From Octopus bimaculoides (lineage: Eukaryota): DNA of 40,398 nt. Shown here piece after piece: positions 1,870 through 34,907 of the stretch. The translations under genes and the position numbers were made by a program. Location: assembly GCF_001194135.2 (NCBI RefSeq), contig NC_068987.1, positions 41,939,390-41,979,787 of the forward strand, given 5' to 3'. Each line of letters begins with the position of its first letter. Within the stretch, counting starts at the first letter, position 1. The notes beneath the pieces are model-generated. The model did not search any database. It was not told the origin of the DNA and worked only from the letters and a program-made list of their open reading frames with translations.

Positions 1870-2809
1870 GTAACACATCTCTATCTTCGTTCATCATTGA
1901 TGTTGTTACGTATAATTTTCTATATTTGCATGGGTCAGATGGAATTTTTTGAGGCAGATTTTCTATGGCCAATGCTCTTCTTGTCACTGACCCACATAGG
2001 TAATATTTCTCCTCATCATATGGATACACAAACAACACGATGGCCAGAGTTGTTTCATGGAAGATTGCAAATGAACAATAATATTTGTATGATGGTGATG
2101 TTTACACATACATATATGTATGCAACTTGCTTTGGTGGGGCTGAACCAAAATCCACATGGTTGGGGAGGAAACGTTTCACTTTCTCCCTGTTTTTTTTTT
2201 TATACTTTTTCCCAATCTTTGGGAATAAGCTTCATTTCTAACTGAGAAGTCACAAGTTCTAGTCACTGAGGTCACTTAATTGTCTAATGGAAACAGTCAG
2301 TGGGATTTGGGTTAACAGGCTTCATAGGTTGGTCATGTGAAGATATAGGTGAGGGCTGGTGACAGGAAGAGCATCCAGCTGTATACACTCTACCTCAGTA
2401 AATTCCATCCAATCTATGCAAGCATGGAGAAGTGGCTGTTAAAACATGTGCCTTGTATTGAGTGCCATATTTATAAATATATAAAGCTATATGATGAATA
2501 TCCTTGTTCATCACTTTTTCCAATCCTTAGTTTGTATTTTCTCTTGTACTCACTTTCTTTTACCTTAAGTGTATGCTGATATGTCATCATCATTATCTTC
2601 TTTCCAGCTACTTCCACCCTTATATAATGCAGGGTAATCATGTACTCCCTCTATAGCAAGACAGCTGTGCTTCTCTGTTTGTCATACTTTAGCCTGTCAT
2701 GACCTGGCATAAATCTACCTCCCTCACTACGGTACCCTCACTCAGGCCAAGGGGGCTTTTTCTTTGTCTTACTCATTACTTGTTGATCTCATTAGTGTTG
2801 GTATTTTGA

Positions 2810-2966
2810 AAAATGCACCCATTCCACTCTGTAAAGTGGTTGGCATTAGGAAGAGCATCCAGTTGTAGAAATCAGGCCAAAACAAACATTGGAGCTCTGG
2901 GTTGTTGGATCCTGTCAGACTGTTTGATACTGCCAGCATGGAAGATGAACATTAAAAAATGATGAT
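2810..2966 (+). mobile_element. Short copy of the RTE 3' tail (SINE-like or truncated LINE)
   Basis: gtggttggcattaggaagagcatccagttgtagaaa...gccagcatgga...taaaaaatgatga, the same motif as the LINE tails at 10300-10446 and 36220-36373. Boundaries approximate. Confidence 0.65.
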
Positions 2967-3137
2967 AAGCGTTATGAATATAAATATATGAAAATAAAAT
3001 CAGTTCAATCCGCTATCTTTCTTACAGAATTTTGAATTTATGATATATAGCAGGATTGTATTTTATCATGTTCTTAGAAGCCATGTTACATCAGAGCTTC
3101 CTAGTGTCTCTCCCTTCTCCCTCTCTTTAACACTAAT

Positions 3138-3873
3138 TATTATTATTCATTTATCTAATTTTGTCACAGTTTGGCTGACTGAATACTATTGGTTATAGCT
3201 ATAGTTAAGAATGCAAATGTCTAGCTCTATCTCATTATTATTGTTATTCTTTCACACCGGCAGCCAGAGCGTTTGCTGTTTTGCAGTGTTATTCACCTAG
3301 TGGTTTTTTTACGATGGCAAGTTAAATTCAATCATTCAGTTATGTTACTCTAAATCCCCAAAATTCCATCTCCTTGTGTCCTAACTCTGGACTCTCTCTC
3401 TCTCCCCTCTCTCAGTTCTGTTAACCACTTGCTTCTTCCAATACGATGACATTATTCCCCCCCCCCCCACATATAAATTAGCTCTATTCAGATTTCCCTA
3501 CCTCATATTTTAATATCTTGTCACATGAAGTAGAAGTCAAAGATTTTCAGATAAGTAACTTTGTTTCCAACCTAGCACACATCTAAAAACCTCTTTTTAT
3601 AGTGCAAATTATAATTACTTTATCATTTCATTATCTATTTATGTACCCACAGTTTCGTCTTCCATGCTGAAAACTTAATATCTCTAAGTTCAATCATTTT
3701 CTCCCTATCTTTCACGCTCGTTTATTATTGTTATTTATTCATTTATATAATTTTCTCACAGTTTGGCTGACCAAATACTGTTGGTTATAGCTAGAGTTAA
3801 GAATGCAAATGTCCAATTCTATCTCGTTATTATTATTATACTTTCACACTGGCAGCCAGAATGTTTGCTGTTT
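3138..3873 (+). repeat. Two direct copies of a ~145-bp unit (about 3138-3282 and 3723-3873)
   Basis: Both read ...cacagtttggctgac...ggttatagcta.agttaagaatgcaaatgtc...ttcacac.ggcagccaga..gtttgctgttt. Confidence 0.85.
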
Positions 3874-4139
3874 CATGGAGCACCTGCCATCCCACTCCCA
3901 CCACCTAAAGCAGAAGTCTTTATCCTCTGACCTCTATCAAATGTCTTCCCTTGAACACCTCCAATGGCTTAACTGCTCCCCCATCTCTACTTAGTGTTTA
4001 TCTCCTATGAAATGTAGTGATTATGTAGGGCATAAAATGATAGTGTAGTGTTTGCAGGTTGAAGGCTATTGTATGTTTATGAGTTCTGCCAAATAAAAGC
4101 TTTCTTTTCGTATACATGATGCTGCTGTCCCCCATCCCA

Positions 4140-6823
4140 GGATCTCATGGGCCCACACCTTCCACACCCTCAGAGTTGGCACACTTAATGGTGGCATATT
4201 GAAAGGTAGGTCTGGTGAGATTGTTGAGATGCTTGAATGGAGATGTGTAGATTTGTGTTGCATCCAAGAAGTAAGGTGGAGAGGAAGTTCTGTTAGGTTC
4301 CTCACAGGCAAAGAACTTAGGTATAAGATTTTCTGGACAGAGAACATTGATGGGGTTGGGGGGCATGGGTATACTTCTTGCGAAGAAATAAGTTGGTAAG
4401 GTAATTGAAGTAGTCAGGGTCTATGATAGAATACATAAGCTTAGATTAGTGCTGTAACATGGATTAGCAACCATTATCTTGGCTTATGACACTCAGCCAG
4501 GGCTACCTGATGAACAGAAAGGCTAATTTTATGACACCCACTTGCAGACAGGGACCTTCTCTTTGTGGCTGGTGACTTCAATAGGCATGTTGGACAACAT
4601 GCAGGGAGTTTCCATGATGTACATAGTGGCTATGGATTTGGTTCCCGCAGTGAGGAAGGAACCAGGCTGCTGGAGTTCTACGATGCAAATGATCTTATGG
4701 TCTGTAATACTAAATTCAGGAAACCTGCCAGTCACCTGTTCACCTACCAGTCTGGTGGACACACTAGTCAGTTTGACCACATTCTCACCAGGAAACGGGA
4801 AAGATGGCAACTTATAAATGCCAAAACCTTCCCAGGTGAAGAATGCACCCTGCAACATAGATTAGTAGTTAGCGACTTCAGGATCAGGGCTAAATAGATG
4901 CCCAGAAGACAACCAGCATGGAAGAGAAGGGTCTGGAAGCTTAAGGATCCTCTGAATGGACAGAGATTTATAGACGTATTACTTGAAGCTTTTGATGCAA
5001 AAGAGGAGGATATAGCATTACATGATGTGGAAGACAACTGGATGTTCCTACAGGACAACCTGTTGAGGGCCACTGACCAGATCTCTGGATGGTGCAAAGT
5101 CCCCTCTCAACCTAAGGTAACATGGTAGTGAAACAGTGTAGTTGACAGGGCCATTAGGGAAAGAAACAGGCATGGAAGGACTGGAAGAACAGTGGTATCA
5201 GGGAACTGTATCAGATCGTCAGAAGGGAAGCTAGGAGACAGGTTTACTTAGCCAGAGGGGAAGGAGATAGGAAAAATTTGCTGATGTTCTACGTCGTGAG
5301 GACCAAAGACTTGAAGTGTTTCATGTTGCAAGACACTGTGTGAGAGAGAATTGTTCTGTTATAGGAGAGAAATGTGTCCACATGGATGATGGCTCACTTG
5401 TATTTAATGAGGCTGCAAAGAGAGAGACTTGGAGACTCTACTATGAAAGGTTGCTAAATGAAGAGAATGAATGGAAGAGAGTCTGTCAAATGTCGACCCA
5501 ACAAAGGGACCAGCTATCCAAATGACAGTACCTTGGTAAATAAAGCAATTAAGGGTATGAAGACAGAGAAAGCCCCCAGCCCATCAGAAATCACCTCAGA
5601 GATGCTTGAAATATCTGGCATTGTAGGCTATAGTCTAGTCAGCTGTATAGTCAATCAGGTGATACATGAAGGAGTCATCCCCAGTGACTGGTGTAGCAGC
5701 ACCATAGTCAACTGCTACAAAGGTAAAGGTGATGCATTAGATACGAATAATTACAGAGGTATCAAGCTGTTGGATCAGGTAATGAAAGTCACAGAGAGGG
5801 TCATAGCCCAACTAATTAGGGAAAGAGAGTCAGTTTTGATGAGATGCAGTTTGGGTTCGTGCCAGGGAAAAGCACCACTGATGCTATATTTCTGGTAAAA
5901 CAGCTGCAGGAGAAATACATAGCCAAAAATAAAACTCTGTACCTGGCTTTTGTTGACATGGAGAAAGCCTTTGACAGGGTCCCCCGATCCCTTATCTGGT
6001 GGTCAATGAGGAATCTAGGGATAGATGAATGGTTAGTGAGAGCTGTGTGAGCCATGTACAGGGATGCCCTCAGTAAGGTGAGGGTTGCCAATGAGTACAG
6101 TGAAGAATTCTGGGTAGCGGGACGGCTGCACCAAGGTTCAGTCCTCAGCCCCCTCCTATTTATCATAGTCCTCCTAGCAATAACACAGGAATTCAAGACA
6201 GGATGCCCCTGGGAGCTCCTCTATGCTGATGACCTTGCACTAATTGCGGAGTCACTATCAGAACTAGAGGAGAAGTTTCAGGTGTGGAAGCAAGGACTAG
6301 AATCAAAGTGCCTTAGAGTTAACCTAGCTAAAACCAGTCCTAATAAGTAGGAAGTTAGACAAACCACAAACCCATTCAGGTAGATGGCCCTGCTTGATCT
6401 GTAGAAAAGGCATAGGTAGAAACTCGATAAGATGTACCCAGTGTAAGCTATGGACACATAAGAGTTGCAGCAATATCAAAGGAAGGCTAACCAGGAAGAT
6501 AGTTTTTGTATGTGGCAGATGCTCAGGAGCAATAGACACTGAAAATGTGCAGAAAACAACTTCTGCCACATTCCAGTGAGAAAAACTAGAAGTAGTTGAT
6601 AGCTTCCATTACCTAGGTGACCAAGTCAGTAGCGGGGGAGGGTGCGCTGAATGTGTAGCTTCTGGAATAAGAATAGCCTGGGCAAAGTTCAGAGAGCTCT
6701 TACCTCTGCTGGTGTCAAAGGGCCTCTCACTCAGAGTAAAAGGCAGACTGTATGATGCATGTGTACGAACAGCCATGCTACATGGCAGTGAAACATGGGC
6801 CATGACTGCTGAGGACATGCTTA
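4140..6823 (+). mobile_element. Degraded RTE-clade LINE, 5' part: AP endonuclease and reverse transcriptase, with many stops and frameshifts
   Basis: APE motifs in ORF fragments (LCCIQEVRWRG, AGDFN, DHIL). RT motifs QFGFVPGKST, FVDMEKAFDRV, LHQGSVLSPLLF and LYADD (about 6220). 5' boundary uncertain. Confidence 0.92.
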
Positions 6824-6873
6824 TAGGAAAGTTGGTTATACATCATTAGATGTATACCTGACTTTCCTATATA

Positions 6874-7104
6874 NNNNNNNNNNNNNNNNNNNNNNNNNNN
6901 NNNNNNNNNNNNNNNNNNNNNNNNNNNNNNNNNNNNNNNNNNNNNNNNNNNNNNNNNNNNNNNNNNNNNNNNNNNNNNNNNNNNNNNNNNNNNNNNNNNN
7001 NNNNNNNNNNNNNNNNNNNNNNNNNNNNNNNNNNNNNNNNNNNNNNNNNNNNNNNNNNNNNNNNNNNNNNNNNNNNNNNNNNNNNNNNNNNNNNNNNNNN
7101 NNNN
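6874..7104. other. Assembly gap (N run)
   Basis: Run of n. ORFs crossing it are artefacts. Confidence 0.98.
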
Positions 7105-8366
7105 AAACACACACAAAGAAAAATGAAAGAAATGAAATGTACACTCGTGTGATACATGCATGCAATGTACAAATGAAAGAAAACATGCAATATGGGCAGT
7201 AAATGCCACCTAGTAAAAACAAATGAGACAATGAGAAAACAAATCGTGATGACTACTGTCCAGGAACTGGAATCACGGAATGTGAAAGTCTGAGCGTTTG
7301 TTTTTACTGAAAGGAAAGAAAATGTATGAGTGCACAAGTGTGTGTGTGAGAAAAAACACAGAACATAGTAAAAGTGTCTGTAGAGAAAAAAATCCAGTTC
7401 GTACAAGAGTTACACAAGTTGATTTTGAATGTCCGTGCTCAGGAAGTTGTGGTCAAGGAGCAGAGCTATAGTTGAGCATCAGAATGCTAGTTGTGACCGG
7501 TTACCCGGTACGGAATATTCAATGAAAGTTACACAAGGAAAATTTGGTCTGTTGATCGTGAGTGGAAAACATCCACTCTAACAGAGTCGACAAAACCGAG
7601 TGTGTTGATATGGTGTGTCCCTGGTGGTTGGGTTGTTGGCGCACGACATTGTGGTAGACAGTACATTGATGGTGAAGACGTCGGCGCAGGAACTGTAATA
7701 TAGCTGTGTTCTGTATGTGTGGTGGTAATGATGTTGACAGTGGTAATGGGTCAGTTGAAACTTGGCGACGTCGGGGGGAATGCTTGTAGTTGGTAGTAGT
7801 AATTGTTGTCGTCACAGTGGTAATCTTGGTTGAATGAAGCTGGTGGTGAAAAGGTTGTTCGTTCATTGTTGTTTGTAGAGGTGCGCTTTTTACAGACGAT
7901 CGACAGACAAATCTCTGTACGACCATTAGCGAAAACCTCGAAGAAAAATTTTCTTAACCCAAGATGAAAAAAAACGACCATGCAAACTTAAAAGAAAAAG
8001 GAGAAATGGTGACGAATGGAAAAACAGAGGACTCCTTTTATTTAAACGTGTCACACGGTCGAACACCAAAATATATATCAAAGATGATATACAAGTAATT
8101 ATGTTATACTACGGTAACATAGATTTTGTAAATACCAGTAATGAGACGATAGAAAAGACAACCGTATGAAATGAATAACAAGAGTTATTGTGTGGCATAA
8201 AAGATGTATGTGTATGTGAGAGTGTGAATGCAACATATAAAAACATAATAAAAAAACAGGCCGTCTATATGTATGTGAGATATCACAGCAGAAAGAAAGT
8301 CAGAACACGTGAGAGTTTTATACCAAGTTTTTTTTTTGAGTACACAATTGGAAAGTCGCAGGCTGT

Positions 8367-9038
8367 NNNNNNNNNNNNNNNNNNNNNNNNNNNNNNNNNN
8401 NNNNNNNNNNNNNNNNNNNNNNNNNNNNNNNNNNNNNNNNNNNNNNNNNNNNNNNNNNNNNNNNNNNNNNNNNNNNNNNNNNNNNNNNNNNNNNNNNNNN
8501 NNNNNNNNNNNNNNNNNNNNNNNNNNNNNNNNNNNNNNNNNNNNNNNNNNNNNNNNNNNNNNNNNNNNNNNNNNNNNNNNNNNNNNNNNNNNNNNNNNNN
8601 NNNNNNNNNNNNNNNNNNNNNNNNNNNNNNNNNNNNNNNNNNNNNNNNNNNNNNNNNNNNNNNNNNNNNNNNNNNNNNNNNNNNNNNNNNNNNNNNNNNN
8701 NNNNNNNNNNNNNNNNNNNNNNNNNNNNNNNNNNNNNNNNNNNNNNNNNNNNNNNNNNNNNNNNNNNNNNNNNNNNNNNNNNNNNNNNNNNNNNNNNNNN
8801 NNNNNNNNNNNNNNNNNNNNNNNNNNNNNNNNNNNNNNNNNNNNNNNNNNNNNNNNNNNNNNNNNNNNNNNNNNNNNNNNNNNNNNNNNNNNNNNNNNNN
8901 NNNNNNNNNNNNNNNNNNNNNNNNNNNNNNNNNNNNNNNNNNNNNNNNNNNNNNNNNNNNNNNNNNNNNNNNNNNNNNNNNNNNNNNNNNNNNNNNNNNN
9001 NNNNNNNNNNNNNNNNNNNNNNNNNNNNNNNNNNNNNN
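8367..9038. other. Assembly gap (N run)
   Basis: Run of n. Confidence 0.98.
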
Positions 9039-9425
9039 TACATCATTAGATGTATACCTGACTTTCCTATATAAAATTAAGAATATAAACGGAACACTGA
9101 ACTCCGGACTATCAACTTATACAACATTTATTCAGGTGGTAAATATATACATCTTAGCTCTTGTTGTTACAGCTTCTATGTGTGTGAGCATAGTTGTTAG
9201 GACGTTGTTATGTAGATGTGAGCGAGCTGTCGAGTGTAAGTCCGAAAGATGGAGAGTGACAGCTATACACGTAAAGAGACTGTCTGCAGGTTGGAATGTC
9301 AGAGACACTGCTTGACATGTCCATGCTCTATTGCTGGCCAGCAAGAAAGAGAGAGAATTAAGCGGGAAAGCTTGCTTGTTTAATTCCACGCATGCGTGAG
9401 ACTATGCATGCGCACGGCGTTACTA

Positions 9426-10446
9426 CATGCTTAAGGTTGCAAGAAATGAAGCCAGTATGCTCTGATGTATGTGTAATGTCAGTGTGCATACTCGACAGAG
9501 TGTAAGTACCTTGAGAGAAAAGTTGGACCTAAGAAGCATCAGTTGTGGAGTACAAGAGAGACGATTGCGCTGATATGGTCATGTGGCGAGAATGGATGAG
9601 GATAGTTGTGTGATAAGTGCCACACCCTAGCGGTTGAGGGTACCTGTGGAAGAGGTAGACCCAGGAAGACCTAGGATGAGGTGGTGAAGCACGACCTCCG
9701 AACATTAGACCTCACCAAAGCAATGACTAGTGACCAAGACCTTTGGAAATATGCTGTGCCTGAGAAGATCCGGCAAGCCAAGTGAGACCATAATCTGTGG
9801 CCTCTGCCAGGGGTGTAGCCAGCCTACTTATTCGTACCTTTACTTCATTGGACTCTAAACTCTGCTTGCGAAGACCTGTTGACGCAAGTGAAATTGAAAT
9901 TGAATCAAATTTGACGACTCCCATGCTAACCTTTCCTTCATTGGACACTAAACTCTGCTTGCGAAAACCTGTTGGGGCAAGTGAAATCGAAATCGTAATT
10001 GAACCAAATTTGATGACTGGCACCTGTGCCAGTGGAGTGCTAACAGCACCGTCTGAGCGTGATCATTGCCAGAGCAGCTGTCTGGTTTCTGTGCCGGTGG
10101 CATGTAAATAGCACCATTTGAGTGTGATCGTTACCAGCGTTGCCCTACTGGCACGTGAAAAAACATTCGAGCGAGGTCATTGCCAGTGCCACTGGACTGG
10201 CTCCTGTGCAGGCAGCATGTAAAAAACGCCATTTTGAGTGTGGCCATTGCCAGTACCTGACTGGCCCCCGTGCTGGTGGTACGTAAAAGCACCCACTACA
10301 CTCTTGGAGTGGTTGGCATTAGGAAGGGCATCCAACTTTGCGAGATCAGATTGGAGCCTGGTGCTGCCATCTGGTTCTCCAATCCTCAGTCAAATTGTCT
10401 AACCTATGCTAGCATGGAAAGCGGACGTTAAACGATGATGATGATA
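9426..10446 (+). mobile_element. RTE LINE, 3' part: ORF end, 3' UTR with ~95-bp subrepeats, GAT-repeat tail
   Basis: Continues the pre-insertion sequence (gcaagaaatgaagccagtatg...ggaagaggtagacccagg). Ends ggaaagcggacgttaaacgatgatgatgat. Collinear with 35245-36373. Confidence 0.88.

Positions 10447-10448
<2 letters not shown>

Positions 10449-10514
<66 letters not shown>
10449..10514. repeat. (TA)n microsatellite at the LINE tail
   Basis: Pure TA run. Confidence 0.97.
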
Positions 10515-10518
<4 letters not shown>

Positions 10519-11179
10519 TGATGGTGGTGAAAGGTCTGAAAGTATTGGACAGTAAACGATGATGATGAGGATGACTGACCTGTGAAGCCTGTTTACCCAA
10601 ATTCCATTGTCTGTTTTCATTAGACCACTATTTCAGCGATTTTCAGAGTGAAGTGAAGCTGTTTAAACTCTTTTACTTTTTGCATTCATGTTGAATGAAT
10701 GAAATATTAGAGAGTGATGGTGGTTGATTTATTGAACAAATGATTGTGGATTTATCTTAGGTTTACACAGTTACATAAAGACAGGATTTATATCAAAAGA
10801 GTTAAGTAAATGAAGGATGTATTTCAGAACAGAAACAAAATAGAAAATTTGTTGTTTAGTCTGATGGTCAGGCATCTCTAATCAAGACATGTCTCCATAA
10901 TCAAAGTTGTCCCAATCATGGCTATCCCATCTTTTTCTTTAAGTTTCGTCTATACAGTACTACATTAACAAATGTGATCTTTTTTCTTCTTAAACAGAAA
11001 GGTGTGAAATGAAGGCTATTTGGCTGTTGTTTATAGCACTTTAATCAATTTTGGAATAGCTCTCTTCTGTTGCTAGAAGCGATGTTAGGCATGTTTCTGA
11101 ATTATGAAATTTGGGGAAAATAGCAGTGACAAAAATTGTGTGCTTGAGAAAACGTGTCAAGTTGAGTGAAATTGTAGTC

Positions 11180-11353
11180 ATGACACATAAAAGGCACCTA
11201 CTACACTCTATGGAGTGGTTGGCGTTAGGAAGGGCATCCAGCTGTAGAAACCAACCAAACAGACTGGGGCCTTGTGCAGCTTTCTGAGTTACCAGTTCTA
11301 CTCAAACCATCTAACCCATGCTAACATGGAAAACAGATGCTAAATGATGATGA
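11180..11353 (+). mobile_element. RTE-tail SINE-like copy
   Basis: ctactacactctatggagtggttggcgttaggaagggcatccagctgtagaaa...taaatgatgatgat. Confidence 0.7.
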
Positions 11354-11954
11354 TTGTATCCATAAAGTCATGGTGGGATTTCAAAACTATTGATGTATCT
11401 TCTAACGCTACACATTTCATATCCATGTTGAATAAGAGACTAATAAAGTTTTGATATGGCTTCTATTTGTTGACCTACACACATCTAATCCATACTCCAG
11501 TTCTTGCTACCAACAACGAAGAACATCAAGCGTAACAGATTGAACAGCATCACTGTTGTGTTCAATACTTGTAATAGGAACATTACATGTGTGGTGGCTC
11601 TTCCTTTAACTTGCAAACGTGCGTCACTAATTCAAATTTTACAAGCCAAAGAATGCATTGAGCTCTCCTTTGCACTGTCCATGTCTTGACTGCTGCATCA
11701 GCTTGGCATGGCATCAGTTATGTCACTGTCATGTGACTAGCTGCATGTGCATCTCAACGTTCTTTGTACACTCATCCAACTGGAGTATCAATGAGATATG
11801 TGTAGGGCAACAAATGGAAGCCACATTGAATTGCACCAAACTATATAAATTTCATTAGTTGATCACTTATTCAATACGGATATGAAATGTATAGTGTTGC
11901 TAGTTACATCAATAAATAGTTTTGAAATCCCACCATGACTTTATGGACAGACTG
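11350..11954 (-). mobile_element. Internally deleted Tc1/mariner-type DNA transposon
   Basis: Inverted repeats: ccataaagtcatggtgggatttcaaaactatt (11360-11391) and its reverse complement ending at 11946. The right end is ...CTG followed by TA. The minus strand reads WTVQRRAQCILWLVKF (N-terminal-like) and W*QELEYGLDVCRSTN (C-terminal-like). Confidence 0.75.
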
Positions 11955-13181
11955 TATTATTGAAAGATTTCATTGAAAAAAGTAATTATCGCAAAAATAA
12001 GTTAAAATTTGTCCTGAAATAAGTGACAATATAAAACAAATTTTTTACATAGAACGTGACAAGGAGGGAGTTCAAACATCAGGGAAAAGAGAAGCTTCAT
12101 CTTTTGTATTTTGTGTATTATTTCTTTTGATGAAGAAAATTTTAATGAGAAAGTGGATTTGACTGAACAAATTACAGTATGATGTACATTTGGCATGTGT
12201 TTTATTGACTTCACAATGATGTAAACTGAAATACTTTAAAGTTATTTATTAATAATTTCAATAATAATGGTTGAATATCAACAACATTGACATTTTGATG
12301 AAGGAGGCATTACTGATATGGGGGACATTTTTGTAGGAAACAACATTACACTAATATGGTGGATGTTGGTCCTTTTATGTAGGAGGCACTGCTACACTGA
12401 TATAATGGATATTGGTGCTTATGTTGGATTATGTCTGCTTTCCTTGCTGGTATTGGCAGGATAGGTTTTCACATTCAAAGTCACCAGTTATTTCAAGGTC
12501 CTGCTCAGCTAAATGGGTCAGTGGATTGCATCTTGCATCTGTTTCAGTTTTGATTATGGTTTCTCTGGCTGGATGCCCATCTAAATATCAACGATTTTAT
12601 AATGTGTACTTTTTCCATGGCATCAGCACTAGAAAAGTGTTGTCCTTAATAGAATTAAAGGGTCTGAGTGCTTTTTGTGGCACCAGCACTAGAAAGGTAG
12701 CCATGTCCTCAATATATTGAAAGGGATCTCACCACCTATGTGTCAGCTCACTTGCCAACTTCTTTGTAGAGTGAGACATGAGTAATAATGATGACAAGGG
12801 GAATGGGTGAGGGGGGGAGTGATTGGAGTACTCAGTTTTCTGAGTATATCAGCAGACAGTGTGTGTATGTCTGATTACAGGTGTAATATTGTATCAAAAA
12901 GTGAAAGTTCAGTAATTTCATAAAATATAAATTGAAAAAGAAAAAATCTGTACCAGACTGAAATAAGTAGGGTGGGGCTCAATATAATAATCTAAGACTC
13001 TGGATATGATAATATAAAACTCCAGCATGGGTATAGTTTGGTGATTGGAAGTAGTAAAAGAATAAAGTATATTTTAATTGTGAATCTGTTCAAGACAGTA
13101 TAAAAATGAATGTTAAAGATACTGTGATTATGATGATGATGATAGTGAAAATGTTAATGTCTACCATATATTTCTTTGCAG

Positions 13182-13261
13182 AGAACTTTCGTTGCCTTTG
13201 TACCCATGACAGAGGCTTTGGTTATAAAGGAAGCACATTGCATCGAATCATTCCACAGTTT
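13182..13261 (+). CDS. PPIE: PPIE exon, (E)[26 protein letters not shown]
   Basis: tttctttgcAG acceptor at 13180-81. 80 nt, phase 1 to 0. Classic cyclophilin motif. The donor is non-GT (AT). Confidence 0.93.
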
Positions 13262-13530
13262 ATATCCTAATCAAAACTCATTGGAACTATTTTCCAAGTT
13301 AATTTCTAGAGTTATTTTACATCATTAAAGATAGAATGTTTAGCATTAGGAAAATAATCTAGTTGCAAAATTTTGTTACTTTGTGTGGATCTATTCACAT
13401 TTTTAGAATAGTCTTACATATATTGTATCAGGATAAATGGGAGGTTTAAATGTCTTTTAAATATGCACCCTTTAATGAATCAACATTCACAAAGGAATAC
13501 CAACTACGATTTGATAAGCCTGACAACTAA

Positions 13531-13735
13531 CCTTTTTGTCACCATTCTGCTATTGAAATGCTCTGCCTCTGCTTCAGTTGACATAAATAATGCAAGATTT
13601 AGTAAAATAACATCACTATTAAGTTGGTGTTTAGAACATTAAGTAACCTGAAATTTTGATAGACGATTTTAGTTTAAAAGTGGAAGTGTATATCATAGAA
13701 TCAGAGGTAGTTTCAAGTGGAGGGATTTCAAAAGG
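13531..13735. mobile_element. Degraded piggyBac-type MITE
   Basis: Ends CCTTTTTGTCACC and ATTTCAAAAGG. The internal agttggtgtttagaacat motif is shared with the 13857 and 18238 copies. The TTAA sites are degenerate. Confidence 0.55.
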
Positions 13736-13856
13736 TTTCATATATTATTTTTTTGTAGTAATTAAATTAAGAAGAGAAACATACCTCTTTTCTAGGTTAA
13801 TTCTCTACTTTGTTTAATTAAAATATATAAAGTTTTTACTCTAAGAGCATGTTTAA

Positions 13857-14038
13857 CCTTTTTGTTATTATATTACTTTTGTTTCAATAAATTTTGAAAA
13901 TAATAAAGAATTAGGTAAAATAACTGTCTTCATGAAGCTGGTGTTTGGAACAAATTAACAGGAAAATTTAGATCGCTGTAAAACAGAAAGTTTGTGTCAG
14001 AACCTGGAACAGTCTCTGGCAGGTAGGTAGGAAAAGGG
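13857..14038. mobile_element. piggyBac-type MITE with TTAA TSD
   Basis: TTAA at 13853-56 and 14039-42. Ends CCTTTTTGTTA and GAAAAGGG. Confidence 0.7.
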
Positions 14039-14185
14039 TTAAAACATTTTCATTTTAAAAGCTGTTACACTGATAACAATGAATAATGAAAAGGATTTGT
14101 AAAATGAGAAGTGGTCTTTTTTTTTTTGGAAACAATATTAAGGATTTGTATCACTACATTATATTTGTCCTTAACTCTGAAGTAC

Positions 14186-14291
14186 ATGTGTCAAGGAGGT
14201 GACTTTACGAGGCACAACGGAACAGGAGGAAAATCAATTTATGGAAATAAATTTGATGATGAAAATTTTGTCTTAAAACATACAGGAGCTG
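14186..14291 (+). CDS. PPIE: PPIE exon, [35 protein letters not shown](G)
   Basis: Follows the U12 AC acceptor. GTAAGT donor at 14292. Phase 0 to 1. Cyclophilin signature. Confidence 0.95.
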
Positions 14292-16119: not shown

Positions 16120-16195
16120 GTACATTATCAATGGCTAACAGTGGACCCAACACCAATGGTTCACAGTTTTTCATTTGCACAGAAAAAACTGATTG
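16120..16195 (+). CDS. PPIE: PPIE exon, (G)[24 protein letters not shown](W)
   Basis: tccttgcAG at 16118-19, GTATGT donor at 16196, phase 1 to 2. Confidence 0.95.
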
Positions 16196-19567: not shown

Positions 19568-19634
19568 GCTGGACAATAAACATGTAGCATTTGGTAAAGT
19601 AATTGAAGGAATGGATGTTGTTCGAAGAATGGAG
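19568..19634 (+). CDS. PPIE: PPIE exon, (W)LDNKHVAFGKVIEGMDVVRRME
   Basis: tctacAG at 19566-67, GTAAAT at 19635, phase 2 to 0. Confidence 0.95.
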
Positions 19635-19880
19635 GTAAATTATTGGTTTCTGTTTTCTTTCCCATAATCAATATCAGTTTGATGATATTTTCTTTCATGC
19701 TGGTATGGTTGAGACGAATCAGGTAGAATCTCTTCTAGTCACCAATCTGTACTTGTTTTATAAGAACCCTCTCCATTCCACCACTTACTTTATGTCTACT
19801 GTATTATGGAACAATTGCTCACCAGAAAAATTAAACATCTTTTGCTTAGTGCAACTCATGACATGATTGACATATTTTTA

Positions 19881-20132
19881 ATATATATATATATATATAC
19901 ACGTATATGTATATATACGTATATGTATATGCATGTATGTATATATATATGTATATGCATGTATGTATATATATATGTATATGCATGTATGTATATATAT
20001 ATGTATATGCATGTATATATATATGCATGTATGTATATATATATATATGCATGTATGTATATATATATATGCATGTATGTATATATATATATGCATGTAT
20101 GTATATATATATATGCATGTATGTATATATAT
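19881..20132. repeat. Compound microsatellite ((TA)n GCATGTATG units), running into an N gap at 20133-20446
   Basis: Directly visible. Source of the spurious Y/I/M/H-rich ORFs. Confidence 0.95.
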
Positions 20133-20813
20133 NNNNNNNNNNNNNNNNNNNNNNNNNNNNNNNNNNNNNNNNNNNNNNNNNNNNNNNNNNNNNNNNNNNN
20201 NNNNNNNNNNNNNNNNNNNNNNNNNNNNNNNNNNNNNNNNNNNNNNNNNNNNNNNNNNNNNNNNNNNNNNNNNNNNNNNNNNNNNNNNNNNNNNNNNNNN
20301 NNNNNNNNNNNNNNNNNNNNNNNNNNNNNNNNNNNNNNNNNNNNNNNNNNNNNNNNNNNNNNNNNNNNNNNNNNNNNNNNNNNNNNNNNNNNNNNNNNNN
20401 NNNNNNNNNNNNNNNNNNNNNNNNNNNNNNNNNNNNNNNNNNNNNNCAAATCGTCCAACCCATGCTAGCATGGAAAGCGGACGTTAAACGATGATGATGA
20501 TGATGTGTGTATATATATATATATATAAATAAAAGTAAATGTTAGAGGTAATACTTGATAACTGTAAGCACCTGTGTATGACAGATCGTGGCCGGGGTGA
20601 AAGGATAAATTGGAAACATAAAAATAAAAACAAAACACAAAGGATTCTGCGGTACACGTGTTTCAAGCTTTATATTTGTTGCATCATTATTGGTATATAA
20701 TTGATAGTATAAAGCTATCTTCAGCCGCAAATATATTCTTTCCCAAGAATTATATCACAAAGAGGAAATTAAAGGAGGGAGAAACATGAGAGATAAAAGG
20801 TGAGAGTCCACTT

Positions 20814-20920
20814 GGTATTGTCCATTGTAATATACCTCGTAGAATCTTTAATTTGAAATATTTACATAAAAGTTCATCGGTACTCCAAAATCTACGAGGT
20901 ATATTACAATGGACAATACC
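20814..20920. repeat. Perfect 30-bp inverted repeat with a 47-nt spacer (MITE-like hairpin)
   Basis: ggtattgtccattgtaatatacctcgtaga (20814-20843) is the exact reverse complement of 20891-20920. Confidence 0.92.
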
Positions 20921-21623
20921 CAGACTTTCAAGTCAGCAATCCGACTGACTTTTTTACCACTGCAGATATAAAAAGAGGCAATGATGATCGATTACATCGA
21001 TATTTTTGTGAATCTCTGAAGAGGCCTAGCGAATCATGCATGTACCCCCATTACATCATTTTCATCTGCTAATTACTCCGGCACACAGGAGCTATAGGGA
21101 TAGAATGGGGCATGCCAACGCTAGGCTGAAACAGCTGTAAGTTTCTGTATATTCTCCAATTGCTAAATGTACTTTATATTTATTACCTTAATTGTTAATA
21201 TGGCATGGTATGTCATAAGCATCTGTATATTGTGGTTTTTGTCATTTTAGTTACAAAATAAACAAATTAATTCAATGGAATACAGCATATTCTCCTTCAT
21301 TGTCTTATTGCTATATAAATTTAGGGTAAAATAACCCCCTTTTACCCGCACCCACTTATTACACTTGGTATAACACTAGTGTAGCAATAATTGGGTACCC
21401 TCCTAGCAGTATATTGGATAGATACTATCCCTTAGTGGGTTGAATTCTCAACCCCTAACTCTCTTGCATTATATACATATACACATAGAAAATACTTGCC
21501 TAAGGTGCCTTGCAGTAGGCCCGAATCTTTGACCACATAGTTGGGAAGCACGCTTCTTAACCAGACAGCCATGCAAGCACCTATTAAATATTTATTTAAT
21601 AATAATTCTTCTTTATCTTTCAG

Positions 21624-21695
21624 AGTTTTGGTTCTAAGTCAGGGAAAACTTCTGAGAAAGTAACAATATCAAATTGTGGAGAACTTTGTTGCTGA
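21624..21695 (+). CDS. PPIE: PPIE last coding exon, SFGSKSGKTSEKVTISNCGELCC*
   Basis: Polypyrimidine tract then CAG at 21621-23. TGA at 21693-95. The six exons total 531 nt, i.e. 176 aa plus stop. Confidence 0.93.
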   Translation, partial: SFGSKSGKTSEKVTISNCGELCC

Positions 21696-23724: not shown

Positions 23725-24137
23725 CTAGTTCTTTCGTCGAAGACTTCGACCTCGAACCCCAGGGGTTCGAGAAGGTCCCCGGGATCTTCCTACGTGACCT
23801 CTTGCTATTGGACTTCGGGTTGGATGGCCACGCATTATAGCACCTCTGCCTCTTGTAGCACAGCGTACACCCCGTGTACTATATATCATACTACCACGAG
23901 AAGTGGATGTAGCTGAAGCTGGGCTGGGGTTAGTGCTAGGGGTAGGTGTGGGGTTAGATGCCCAAACAAATTCTTCACGTCCTTTTCCTGATGATAAACC
24001 AGCACTTGTACTTGGTGTAGAAATTGTACTGGATGAGGTTGGATTCTGTTGAAGTGGTGTAGCAGGTACTTGGTGTTGCTGACTTGCTCCAGGAGACTGG
24101 TCCCACACAATTGGTTGAATTTTACTTTTGCGCAAAC
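23725..24137 (-). CDS. TPR: TPR last exon, (G)LRKSKIQPIVWDQSP...RG-rich tail...SLRRKN*
   Basis: Poly-T then AAG acceptor at 24138-39. TAG stop at 23725-27. In phase with the upstream exons. An S/T/P-rich stretch followed by an RG-rich tail, as in TPR. Confidence 0.8.
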
Positions 24138-33321: not shown

Positions 33322-34907
33322 CCCTTTCGTTACCAAACCGCCCAAAAAAAATTTTGGTTCATGTGACCCAGCCGCCCATAATCACCTATTCATATTTAAA
33401 TGAGAATGTCCGAGCAAATCTCGTTAGTACATTCGTGAAAACACGTGATTATTTGTGTAAACAGTTCAGCTATAGTTTTGTATGACGATCAACGCGTTNN
33501 NNNNNNNNNNNNNNNNNNNNNNNNNNNNNNNNNNNNNNNNNNNNNNNNNNNNNNNNNNNNNNNNNNNNNNNNNNNNNNNNNNNNNNNNNNNNNNNNNNNN
33601 NNNNNNNNNNNNNNNNNNNNNNNNNNNNNNNNNNNNNNNNNNNNNNNNNNNNNNNNNNNNNNNNNNNNNNNNNNNNNNNNNNNNNNNNNNNNNNNNNNNN
33701 NNNNNNNNNNNNNNNNNNNNNNNNNNNNNNNNNNNNNNNNNNNNNNNNNNNNNNNNNNNNNNNNNNNTTTTTCCAAATTTGTTCCTGTTGTGTTTTCAAA
33801 ATTTGTAATCCTGACAAAAAAATGGATACGAATTTTATTCTGTCAAGCAGCGAGTCAGAATTCGAAGGATTTTCTACTGAAGACCTCAATAAATCTAACT
33901 CTGTAACCGAAAAAAAAAAAAGCACGTGGTATTTGATAATGAATCTGCTTCATTTTCCGAAAATGAAAGCAGTGAATCCGAGAGCTCCGATGATAGCGAT
34001 AAAGATAATGAATTAGTACCTGAATGGAGTGAAAATTTAAAAACTCCTTCTTTCAGTGATTTTTCTCAAGAAACTGGACCAAGTCACAGTCTTACCCAGG
34101 AGAGTAAAGCTTTAGACTATTTCTTTTTGCTTTTTCCGATGCACCTATTTGAATTGATTACGGCGGAAACAAAGCGTTACGCTGAATGTAAACAAAGCGT
34201 AAAAAAGGATAGTTTGTGGTTTCCCACAAACGTGAATGAAATTAAAGCATATTTTGCCATGAATATTATTATGGGCATTAGAAAGTTACCCAGAANNNNN
34301 NNNNNTGCTCTGGATTTTAATTTTATACTGGCAAAAGAGACAGTAATGAATCCAGTTATGTGCACAACTCTTCTATAATAATATTTTGTTGTATACCCAA
34401 TGGTATATTTCTGTGTATCTATGTATATGGGAAAGCTTATTTAATCTAGTTGATGGTGTGTGTGTATTTTGTTTTCCAATTTTCTTCAAAGACAAATTCC
34501 AGTCTTTTGTTTTATTTATACCTTTATGGTACACCTGTCTTTTGTGTGTTAAATTCACCTGATGAATCCAGTAATGTGCACAACTCTTCTATAATAATAT
34601 TTTGTTGTATACCCAATTGAATATTAGCTAATAACCCATTTTCTATAGCGATGTTTAAAAAAAAATTTTTAATAATTTTATATTTTGTTGAATTTACCTG
34701 TAATTAGAGTCACTTTGTGACAAAAATTTTGGTATAGAATTGGTTGAGAACCTTTCGTTAAATTATCTTCCAAAAATCACATTAATATGTTGATAAATAA
34801 AAAAGTTAGAGTTGTTTAATGAAACCAGACTAAATTTATGATTATGTTAGAAATTAATTGAAACACATAAGGGGTGTATTTTGGTTAGAAATATGGTAAC
34901 GAAAGGG
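33322..34907 (+). mobile_element. Internally deleted piggyBac transposon (14-bp perfect TIRs, TTAA TSDs) with an N-terminal transposase remnant
   Basis: CCCTTTCGTTACCA at 33322-35 and TGGTAACGAAAGGG at 34894-907. TTAA at 33318-21 and 34908-11. ORFs 33822 and 33926 give an acidic N-terminus then LDYFFLLFP..LFELITAET..Y..W.PTNVNEIKAYFAMNIIMG, PGBD4-like. N gaps at 33499-33767 and about 34295-34305. Confidence 0.88.

Follow-up and report, generated by a model that had tools for sequence, protein, structure and literature searches.

The PPIE gene (cyclophilin E, or Cyp33) of Octopus bimaculoides raises the question of how two exons that meet within the invariant core of the cyclophilin domain are joined, when the first of them is followed by ATATCCT and has no usable GT donor. 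The window, by which we mean the whole 40,398-nt stretch of DNA that was analysed, had been read in the original prediction as containing a U12-type AT-AC intron at 13262-14185, and this reading is upheld here by the signals at the two ends of the intron, by their position weight matrix (PWM) scores and by seven orthologous introns of the U12 type.

The forward strand of the window carries the 3' two-thirds of the PPIE gene, whose six coding exons were located by probing the window with a PPIE protein and by spliced mapping (Table 1). The protein built from these six exons matches XP_014791099.1 of O. bimaculoides at every residue along its whole length (100% identity) and contains a cyclophilin domain (Pfam PF00160, E = 1.5e-48). 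In a search of solved structures human PPIE is the top match (E = 1.2e-110), with PPIF and PPIA behind it. The matched human chain is present in 27 PDB entries, and among the entries listed for it are, judging by their codes, what we take to be human spliceosome structures. No RRM exons were found within the window, and those of the octopus gene presumably lie upstream of it; the octopus RefSeq models of PPIE carry the end of the RRM only (…NMNDSELFGRTIRVNLAKP), and the Argonauta orthologue comprises both an RRM and a cyclophilin domain (PF00076 and PF00160). The four PPIE introns of the window other than 13262-14185 are ordinary GT-AG introns, and the positions and phases of all five coincide with those found in Argonauta, the chiton and the oyster (three of the five also with those of carp). 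Likewise, all six octopus exons are intact and collinear with the orthologues, and the 80-nt length of the exon upstream of the U12-type intron is common to the orthologues of Argonauta, the chiton, the oyster, Lingula, Saccoglossus and Asterias.

Table 1. Features of the PPIE gene in the window, and the corresponding Phe/Met (F/M) site in the PPIE genes of other animals.
Feature	Position	Strand	Evidence or remark
PPIE coding exon, ending with the G of a split codon	1740-1869	+	exact match to XP_014791099.1 residues 65-107
PPIE exon, 80 nt, 5' of the U12-type intron	13182-13261	+	spliced mapping
U12-type intron, AT-AC subtype, 924 nt, phase 0	13262-14185	+	signals, PWM scores, orthologous introns
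U12-type 5' splice site ATATCCTAA; perfect core ATATCCT, AA and not TT at +8/+9	13262-13270	+	
U12-type branch-point sequence TCCTTAAC	14168-14175	+	PWM 15.2 bits, unique in the window
Terminal AC (3' splice site)	14184-14185	+	
PPIE exon, 106 nt, 3' of the U12-type intron, ending with a split-codon G	14186-14291	+	spliced mapping
PPIE exon between GT-AG introns	16120-16195	+	spliced mapping
PPIE exon (LDNKHVAFGKVIEGMDVVRRME) between GT-AG introns	19568-19634	+	spliced mapping
Last PPIE coding exon segment (SFGSKSGKTSEKVTISNCGELCC and TGA stop)	21624-21695	+	spliced mapping
Argonauta hians, F/M site: GTATCCTTT … TTCCTTAAC … AG			intron 2,497 nt
Liolophura (chiton), F/M site: GTATCCTTA … TTCCTTAAC … AG			intron 217 nt
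Ostrea edulis (oyster), F/M site: GTATCCTTC … TTCCTTAAG … AG			intron 3,501 nt
Lingula, F/M site: GTATCCTTT, branch site weak			intron 175 nt
Ischnura (damselfly), F/M site: GTATCCTTT … CCCTTAAC … AG			intron 2,956 nt
Asterias (sea star), F/M site: GTATCCTTT … TCCTTAAT … AG			intron 780 nt
Saccoglossus (acorn worm), F/M site: GTATCCTTT … TTCCATGAC … AG			intron 1,436 nt
Carp (Onychostoma) and whale shark: two exons fused at the F/M site			no intron
Nematostella and Actinia: PPIE gene wholly intronless			no intron

The window belongs to a gapped assembly and contains five N runs, 1,496 bases in total. Two of the gaps (6874-7104 and 8367-9038) lie in the 11.3-kb GT-AG intron of PPIE at 1870-13181, upstream of the U12-type intron. 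This large intron holds remnants of a non-LTR retrotransposon, especially at 4565-6400, among them an endonuclease-like open reading frame at 4565-4897, whose match to Pfam Exo_endo_phos_2 is weak and falls short of the curated cut-off (E = 5.5e-4), and, around 6213-6332, a stretch resembling reverse transcriptase. The 11.3-kb intron also includes a (TGA)6 run at 13125-13143 and a second ATATCCTT at 2498-2505 (+), for which neither a branch site nor an AC partner was found and which we regard as a chance match, since about 3.7 occurrences of ATATCCT per strand are expected from the base composition. Further along, a TA/CA-rich simple repeat at 19806-20494 (translated as YIYIYM…) flanks a gap at 20133-20446 in the GT-AG intron 19635-21623. 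A Ser/Pro/Arg-rich open frame of 136 amino acids at 23725-24135 (-), downstream of PPIE, gives no hit in Pfam and might belong to a neighbouring gene as one of its exons, and an open reading frame at 33926-34378 (+) corresponds to the N-terminus of a piggyBac-type transposase (Pfam DDE_Tnp_1_7, E = 2.4e-8), with interruptions by runs of N at 33499-33767 and 34296-34305.

The exon upstream of the U12-type intron ends in ...CCA CAG TTT at 13261 and the downstream exon starts with ATG TGT CAA at 14186, and a phase 0 splice between them yields ...HRIIPQF/MCQGGDFT, the invariant cyclophilin core, which bears out the in-frame F/M junction originally proposed. GT-AG, GC-AG and AT-AC pairs that keep the frame open were enumerated over about 60-70 nt around both ends; among these canonical pairs the conserved peptide is restored by 13261/14186 only, and every GT-AG or GC-AG alternative removes residues from the catalytic core or adds some to it, in agreement with the claim that no usable GT donor is present. 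Since the octopus protein and human cyclophilin A (CypA) align without gaps at an offset of 74, F134 and M135 correspond to F60 and M61 of CypA, as had been suggested; these two we take to be active-site residues. Reading through the intron gives ATA TCC TAA, and hence the predicted stop immediately after ...QFIS. On the 3' side, the branch-point sequence is followed by ten nucleotides, TCTGAAGTAC, the last two of which are the final AC, so that 8 nt separate the motif from the AC dinucleotide and 10 nt separate it from the exon; the ATATCCT start, the branch-point motif and the terminal AC are thus all confirmed. The candidate branch adenosines, 14173 and 14174, are 12 and 11 nt away from the 3' end of the intron, inside the 11-13 nt published as the optimum distance between branch site and 3' splice site (PMC3584512). 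As to the polypyrimidine tract, which is not distinct in U12-type introns, pyrimidines make up a fraction of 0.59 upstream of the 3' end, against 0.55-0.73 in the four GT-AG introns, a measure that is not discriminating in this AT-rich gene. No known RNA family, snRNA genes included, was detected when the whole window was scanned against Rfam, and consequently none inside the U12-type intron, where no tandem repeats were found either.

To gauge the strength of these signals, PWMs were derived from a training set of 76 human minor introns listed in Table S2 of Olthof et al. 2019. On this scale the branch-site 12-mer TTGTCCTTAACT reaches 15.2 bits and so ranks at the 93rd percentile among the 76 human introns; it is also the top score when all 77,670 positions of the window, on its two strands, are considered. 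The 5' splice site, at 6.5 bits, is close to the minimum of the human introns (range 5.0-16.8, median 14), owing to AA instead of TT at +8/+9, and the U2-type introns of nine PPIE loci attain a maximum of 4.1 bits at their 5' splice sites, far below the octopus value. Of the five PPIE introns that the window contains, 13262-14185 alone scores as U12-like. With the base composition of the window, the expected probability of such signals at two fixed exon edges is about 7e-10, and a chance origin of the U12 signals at 13262-14185 is excluded; a further argument against chance is that seven other animal lineages have U12 signals at this codon boundary. Phase 0 is the minority phase of minor introns, accounting for about 22% of them, and Octopus sinensis has been used as a species with conserved minor introns (PMC10639083).

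The PPIE genomic loci of eleven other animals were compared, each protein being mapped onto its own DNA. Seven of these species have at the F/M site an intron with GTATCCTT, a branch-site motif 9-15 nt from the AG and GT-AG ends (Table 1), and in every intron-bearing species it is the sole U12-like intron of PPIE according to the PWM scores. Its position and phase (…IP.F/MCQGGDF) are identical to those of the octopus intron and the sizes of the flanking exons mostly so. The positions are truly orthologous, because the neighbouring GT-AG introns hold constant positions and phases from fish to molluscs. The orthologous invertebrate introns resemble that of Octopus in their U12-type 5' splice site and branch site and differ from it in their termini, which are GT-AG in all those sampled, whereas AT-AC is found in Octopus only. 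Their interiors are also unrelated; in fact, the Octopus and Argonauta introns have no similarity except in the last ~18 nt, beginning at the branch site. The Lingula intron (4535-4709 of locus L006) carries a perfect TCCTTAAC right after the 5' splice site (GTATCCTTTCCTTAAC), and near its 3' end a weak motif (AACTTAAC, 1.3 bits) followed by a C-run. In Nematostella (L002, 2001-2897) and Actinia (L009, 1001-1891) PPIE is a single exon, compared with 7-11 introns in the bilaterian orthologues; in anthozoans, it seems, either a retrocopy took the place of the gene or the introns were lost wholesale. The alignment of intron positions across molluscs, an insect and vertebrates, which had been put forward as a check, therefore places a U12-type intron in the bilaterian invertebrates sampled and none in shark or carp. 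The possibility that the intron is common to vertebrate PPIE is not borne out for jawed vertebrates, as the two exons are fused in both fishes and PPIE is missing from the human and mouse minor-intron lists.

Taken as a whole, we consider, with a probability of roughly 93%, that 13262-14185 is a constitutive U12-dependent AT-AC intron of octopus PPIE, inherited and with a derived subtype. The signals, the unique junction that restores the frame, the conservation among orthologues, the loss in vertebrates and the polarity of the subtype switch are shown by the data, and what we infer is that the U11/U12 spliceosome is really used and what becomes of transcripts in which the intron is retained. 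By what is established for introns of this class, U11 and later U6atac would pair with ATATCCT at the 5' end, and U12 would pair with TCCTTAAC, so that a branch adenosine bulges out at a distance of 11-12 nt from the 3' end. Once the intron is excised, the Phe codon TTT would adjoin the Met codon ATG in phase 0 and the cyclophilin core would be restored; an intron left in place would result in a protein truncated at the residue equivalent to F60 of CypA, or in a transcript likely to be directed to nonsense-mediated decay. The octopus intron has in common with the catalogued human AT-AC introns of PHB2, E2F4, SCN8A and CRYZL1 the ATATCCT start, TCCTTAAC located 11-12 nt from the end and the AC terminus, and, like them, it is a single such intron among GT-AG introns, in an 'information processing' gene (here RNA processing), and deeply conserved. 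Unlike them, it has AA at +8/+9, a low-end 5' splice-site score and the minority phase 0, and PPIE is not a member of the human or mouse sets of minor-intron genes.

Two other accounts of the AT-AC ends are, in our view, equally and extremely improbable. U2-type introns with such ends exist (PMC11347168), and the major spliceosome might accordingly remove this one, but its 5' end is ATATCCT and not an ATAAGT-like sequence complementary to U1, a near-perfect U12 branch site lies 11-12 nt from the 3' end, and the orthologues all have GTATCCTT and not GTRAGT. The AT and AC ends might instead be assembly or sequencing errors in a U12-type intron with GT-AG ends, or the locus might represent two genes or a broken copy; the window does come from a gapped draft with 1,496 N, and the O. 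vulgaris annotation shows two separate short proteins. Nevertheless, two independent errors would be needed, exactly at the two terminal bases, while in the independent O. vulgaris assembly the 5' end translates to Ile (AT-) and the 3' end to Tyr (TA(C/T)), and XP_052825510.1, the more recent O. bimaculoides model at chromosome level, has the same junction. A split or broken gene is also at odds with six intact exons collinear with their orthologues, and with the fact that the two O. vulgaris halves make up one cyclophilin domain together, neither being a viable fold alone.

A more substantial alternative, although still an unlikely one, is that retention of the U12-type intron, with its stop after QFIS, tunes PPIE to the activity of the minor spliceosome and U6atac, and so couples a cyclophilin of the catalytic stage to the minor pathway. 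Minor introns have been described as U6atac-dependent switches (PMC3728624), and retention here brings an immediate stop. The U12 identity is kept in all eight intron-bearing invertebrate lineages sampled, with no conversion to the U2 type, although long conservation is typical of U12 introns generally (PMC3584512). Minor introns in genes for splicing factors are a familiar theme, and the human minor-intron lists include the splicing-factor genes SNRPE, SRSF10, RNPC3, PPIL4 and UBL5; SNRPE, SRSF10, RNPC3/65K and PPIL4 are likewise spliceosome-associated genes whose expression needs the minor spliceosome, PPIL4 being a cyclophilin different from PPIE. The two half-models of O. vulgaris, one of which reads into the intron, could reflect intron-retaining transcripts. 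An extended version, in which the switch is conserved among invertebrates, is tuned in Octopus by the AT-AC ends and the weak +8/+9 positions, and leaves its trace in the O. vulgaris split through abundant retained transcripts, seems to us slightly less probable again. Against both, cross-regulation of the two spliceosomes is purely conjectural, and the intron is dispensable for the function of PPIE in jawed vertebrates, which lost it without replacement, and in the two sea anemones, whose PPIE is intronless. Moreover, the introns of Octopus and Argonauta have interiors without conservation, and a conserved intronic element is absent. The USSE feedback of U11-48K and U11/U12-65K involves a tandem U11 site, whereas no such tandem site is found in octopus PPIE, (A/G)TATCCT occurring on the forward strand of the window at 2498, 13262 and 36560 only.

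With 13262-14185 read as an inherited minor intron, its history can be reconstructed from the loci compared. Because protostomes and ambulacrarian deuterostomes both have a U12-type intron at the site, the intron at the F/M boundary can be dated, on gene structure, at least to the bilaterian ancestor, and in molluscs, brachiopods, insects, echinoderms and hemichordates it remained of the U12 type, with GT-AG termini. The fused exons of shark and carp indicate a loss before the shark-teleost ancestor by precise deletion and not by conversion to the U2 type, given that carp retains the flanking introns. Carp also lacks the phase-2 intron inside …KTDW/LDGK, its remaining intron positions being common with molluscs. 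PPIE does not appear in the human and mouse minor-intron gene lists, whose order runs POLR3H, PPIL4, PPME1, and absence of the intron in mammals is derived from these published lists and from parsimony based on shark and carp. The AT-AC ends, by parsimony, are derived in the Octopus lineage after its split from Argonauta, because GT-AG ends are found in seven lineages, the octopod Argonauta included; a G to A change at +1 and a G to C change at -1 turned the subtype from GT-AG to AT-AC, and the TT to AA change at +8/+9 likewise is most simply placed after the Argonauta split. Subtype switches are known but rare, and the opposite direction, from AT-AC to GT-AG, has been mentioned (PMC3584512). 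O. vulgaris probably has the AT-AC state too: its protein models read Ile-Ser-stop into the intron and ...Lys-Tyr/Met out of it, and as Ile codons begin with AT and Tyr is encoded by TAC or TAT, the ends of the intron in that assembly are AT...A(C/T).

Regarding annotation, the idea that the intron had gone unnoticed does not hold, since the junction is already present in the O. bimaculoides RefSeq models XP_014791099.1 and XP_052825510.1, in the UniRef entry A0A0L8I3R0 and in XP_029657863.2 of O. sinensis, all four of which contain IIPQFMCQGGDF across it. The use of 13261/14186 in octopus mRNA is accordingly predicted from RefSeq models and protein conservation. No paper on a U12 intron in PPIE/cyp33 was found in full-text literature searches. 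The warning that gene predictors tend to mis-model such introns proved well founded in O. vulgaris, where PPIE is annotated as two genes split exactly at the intron: CAI9726182.1 ends in ...IIPQFIS, and CAI9726181.1 starts inside the 3' end of the intron, MLRICISTLYLFLTLKY/MCQGGDF…. This is a concrete case of an AT-AC intron breaking a gene model, in a gene for which the NCBI models are correct.

The octopus intron is genuine but ordinary, being the form that an ancient minor intron takes in the PPIE gene of Octopus, and its value is a modest one, as a caveat for annotation and as an evolutionary example. PPIE joins those genes connected with splicing that, in many invertebrates, depend on the minor spliceosome, and it offers a well-polarised example in which three known fates of minor introns, namely persistence as a U12-type intron across bilaterian invertebrates, precise deletion and subtype switch, are found in one gene.
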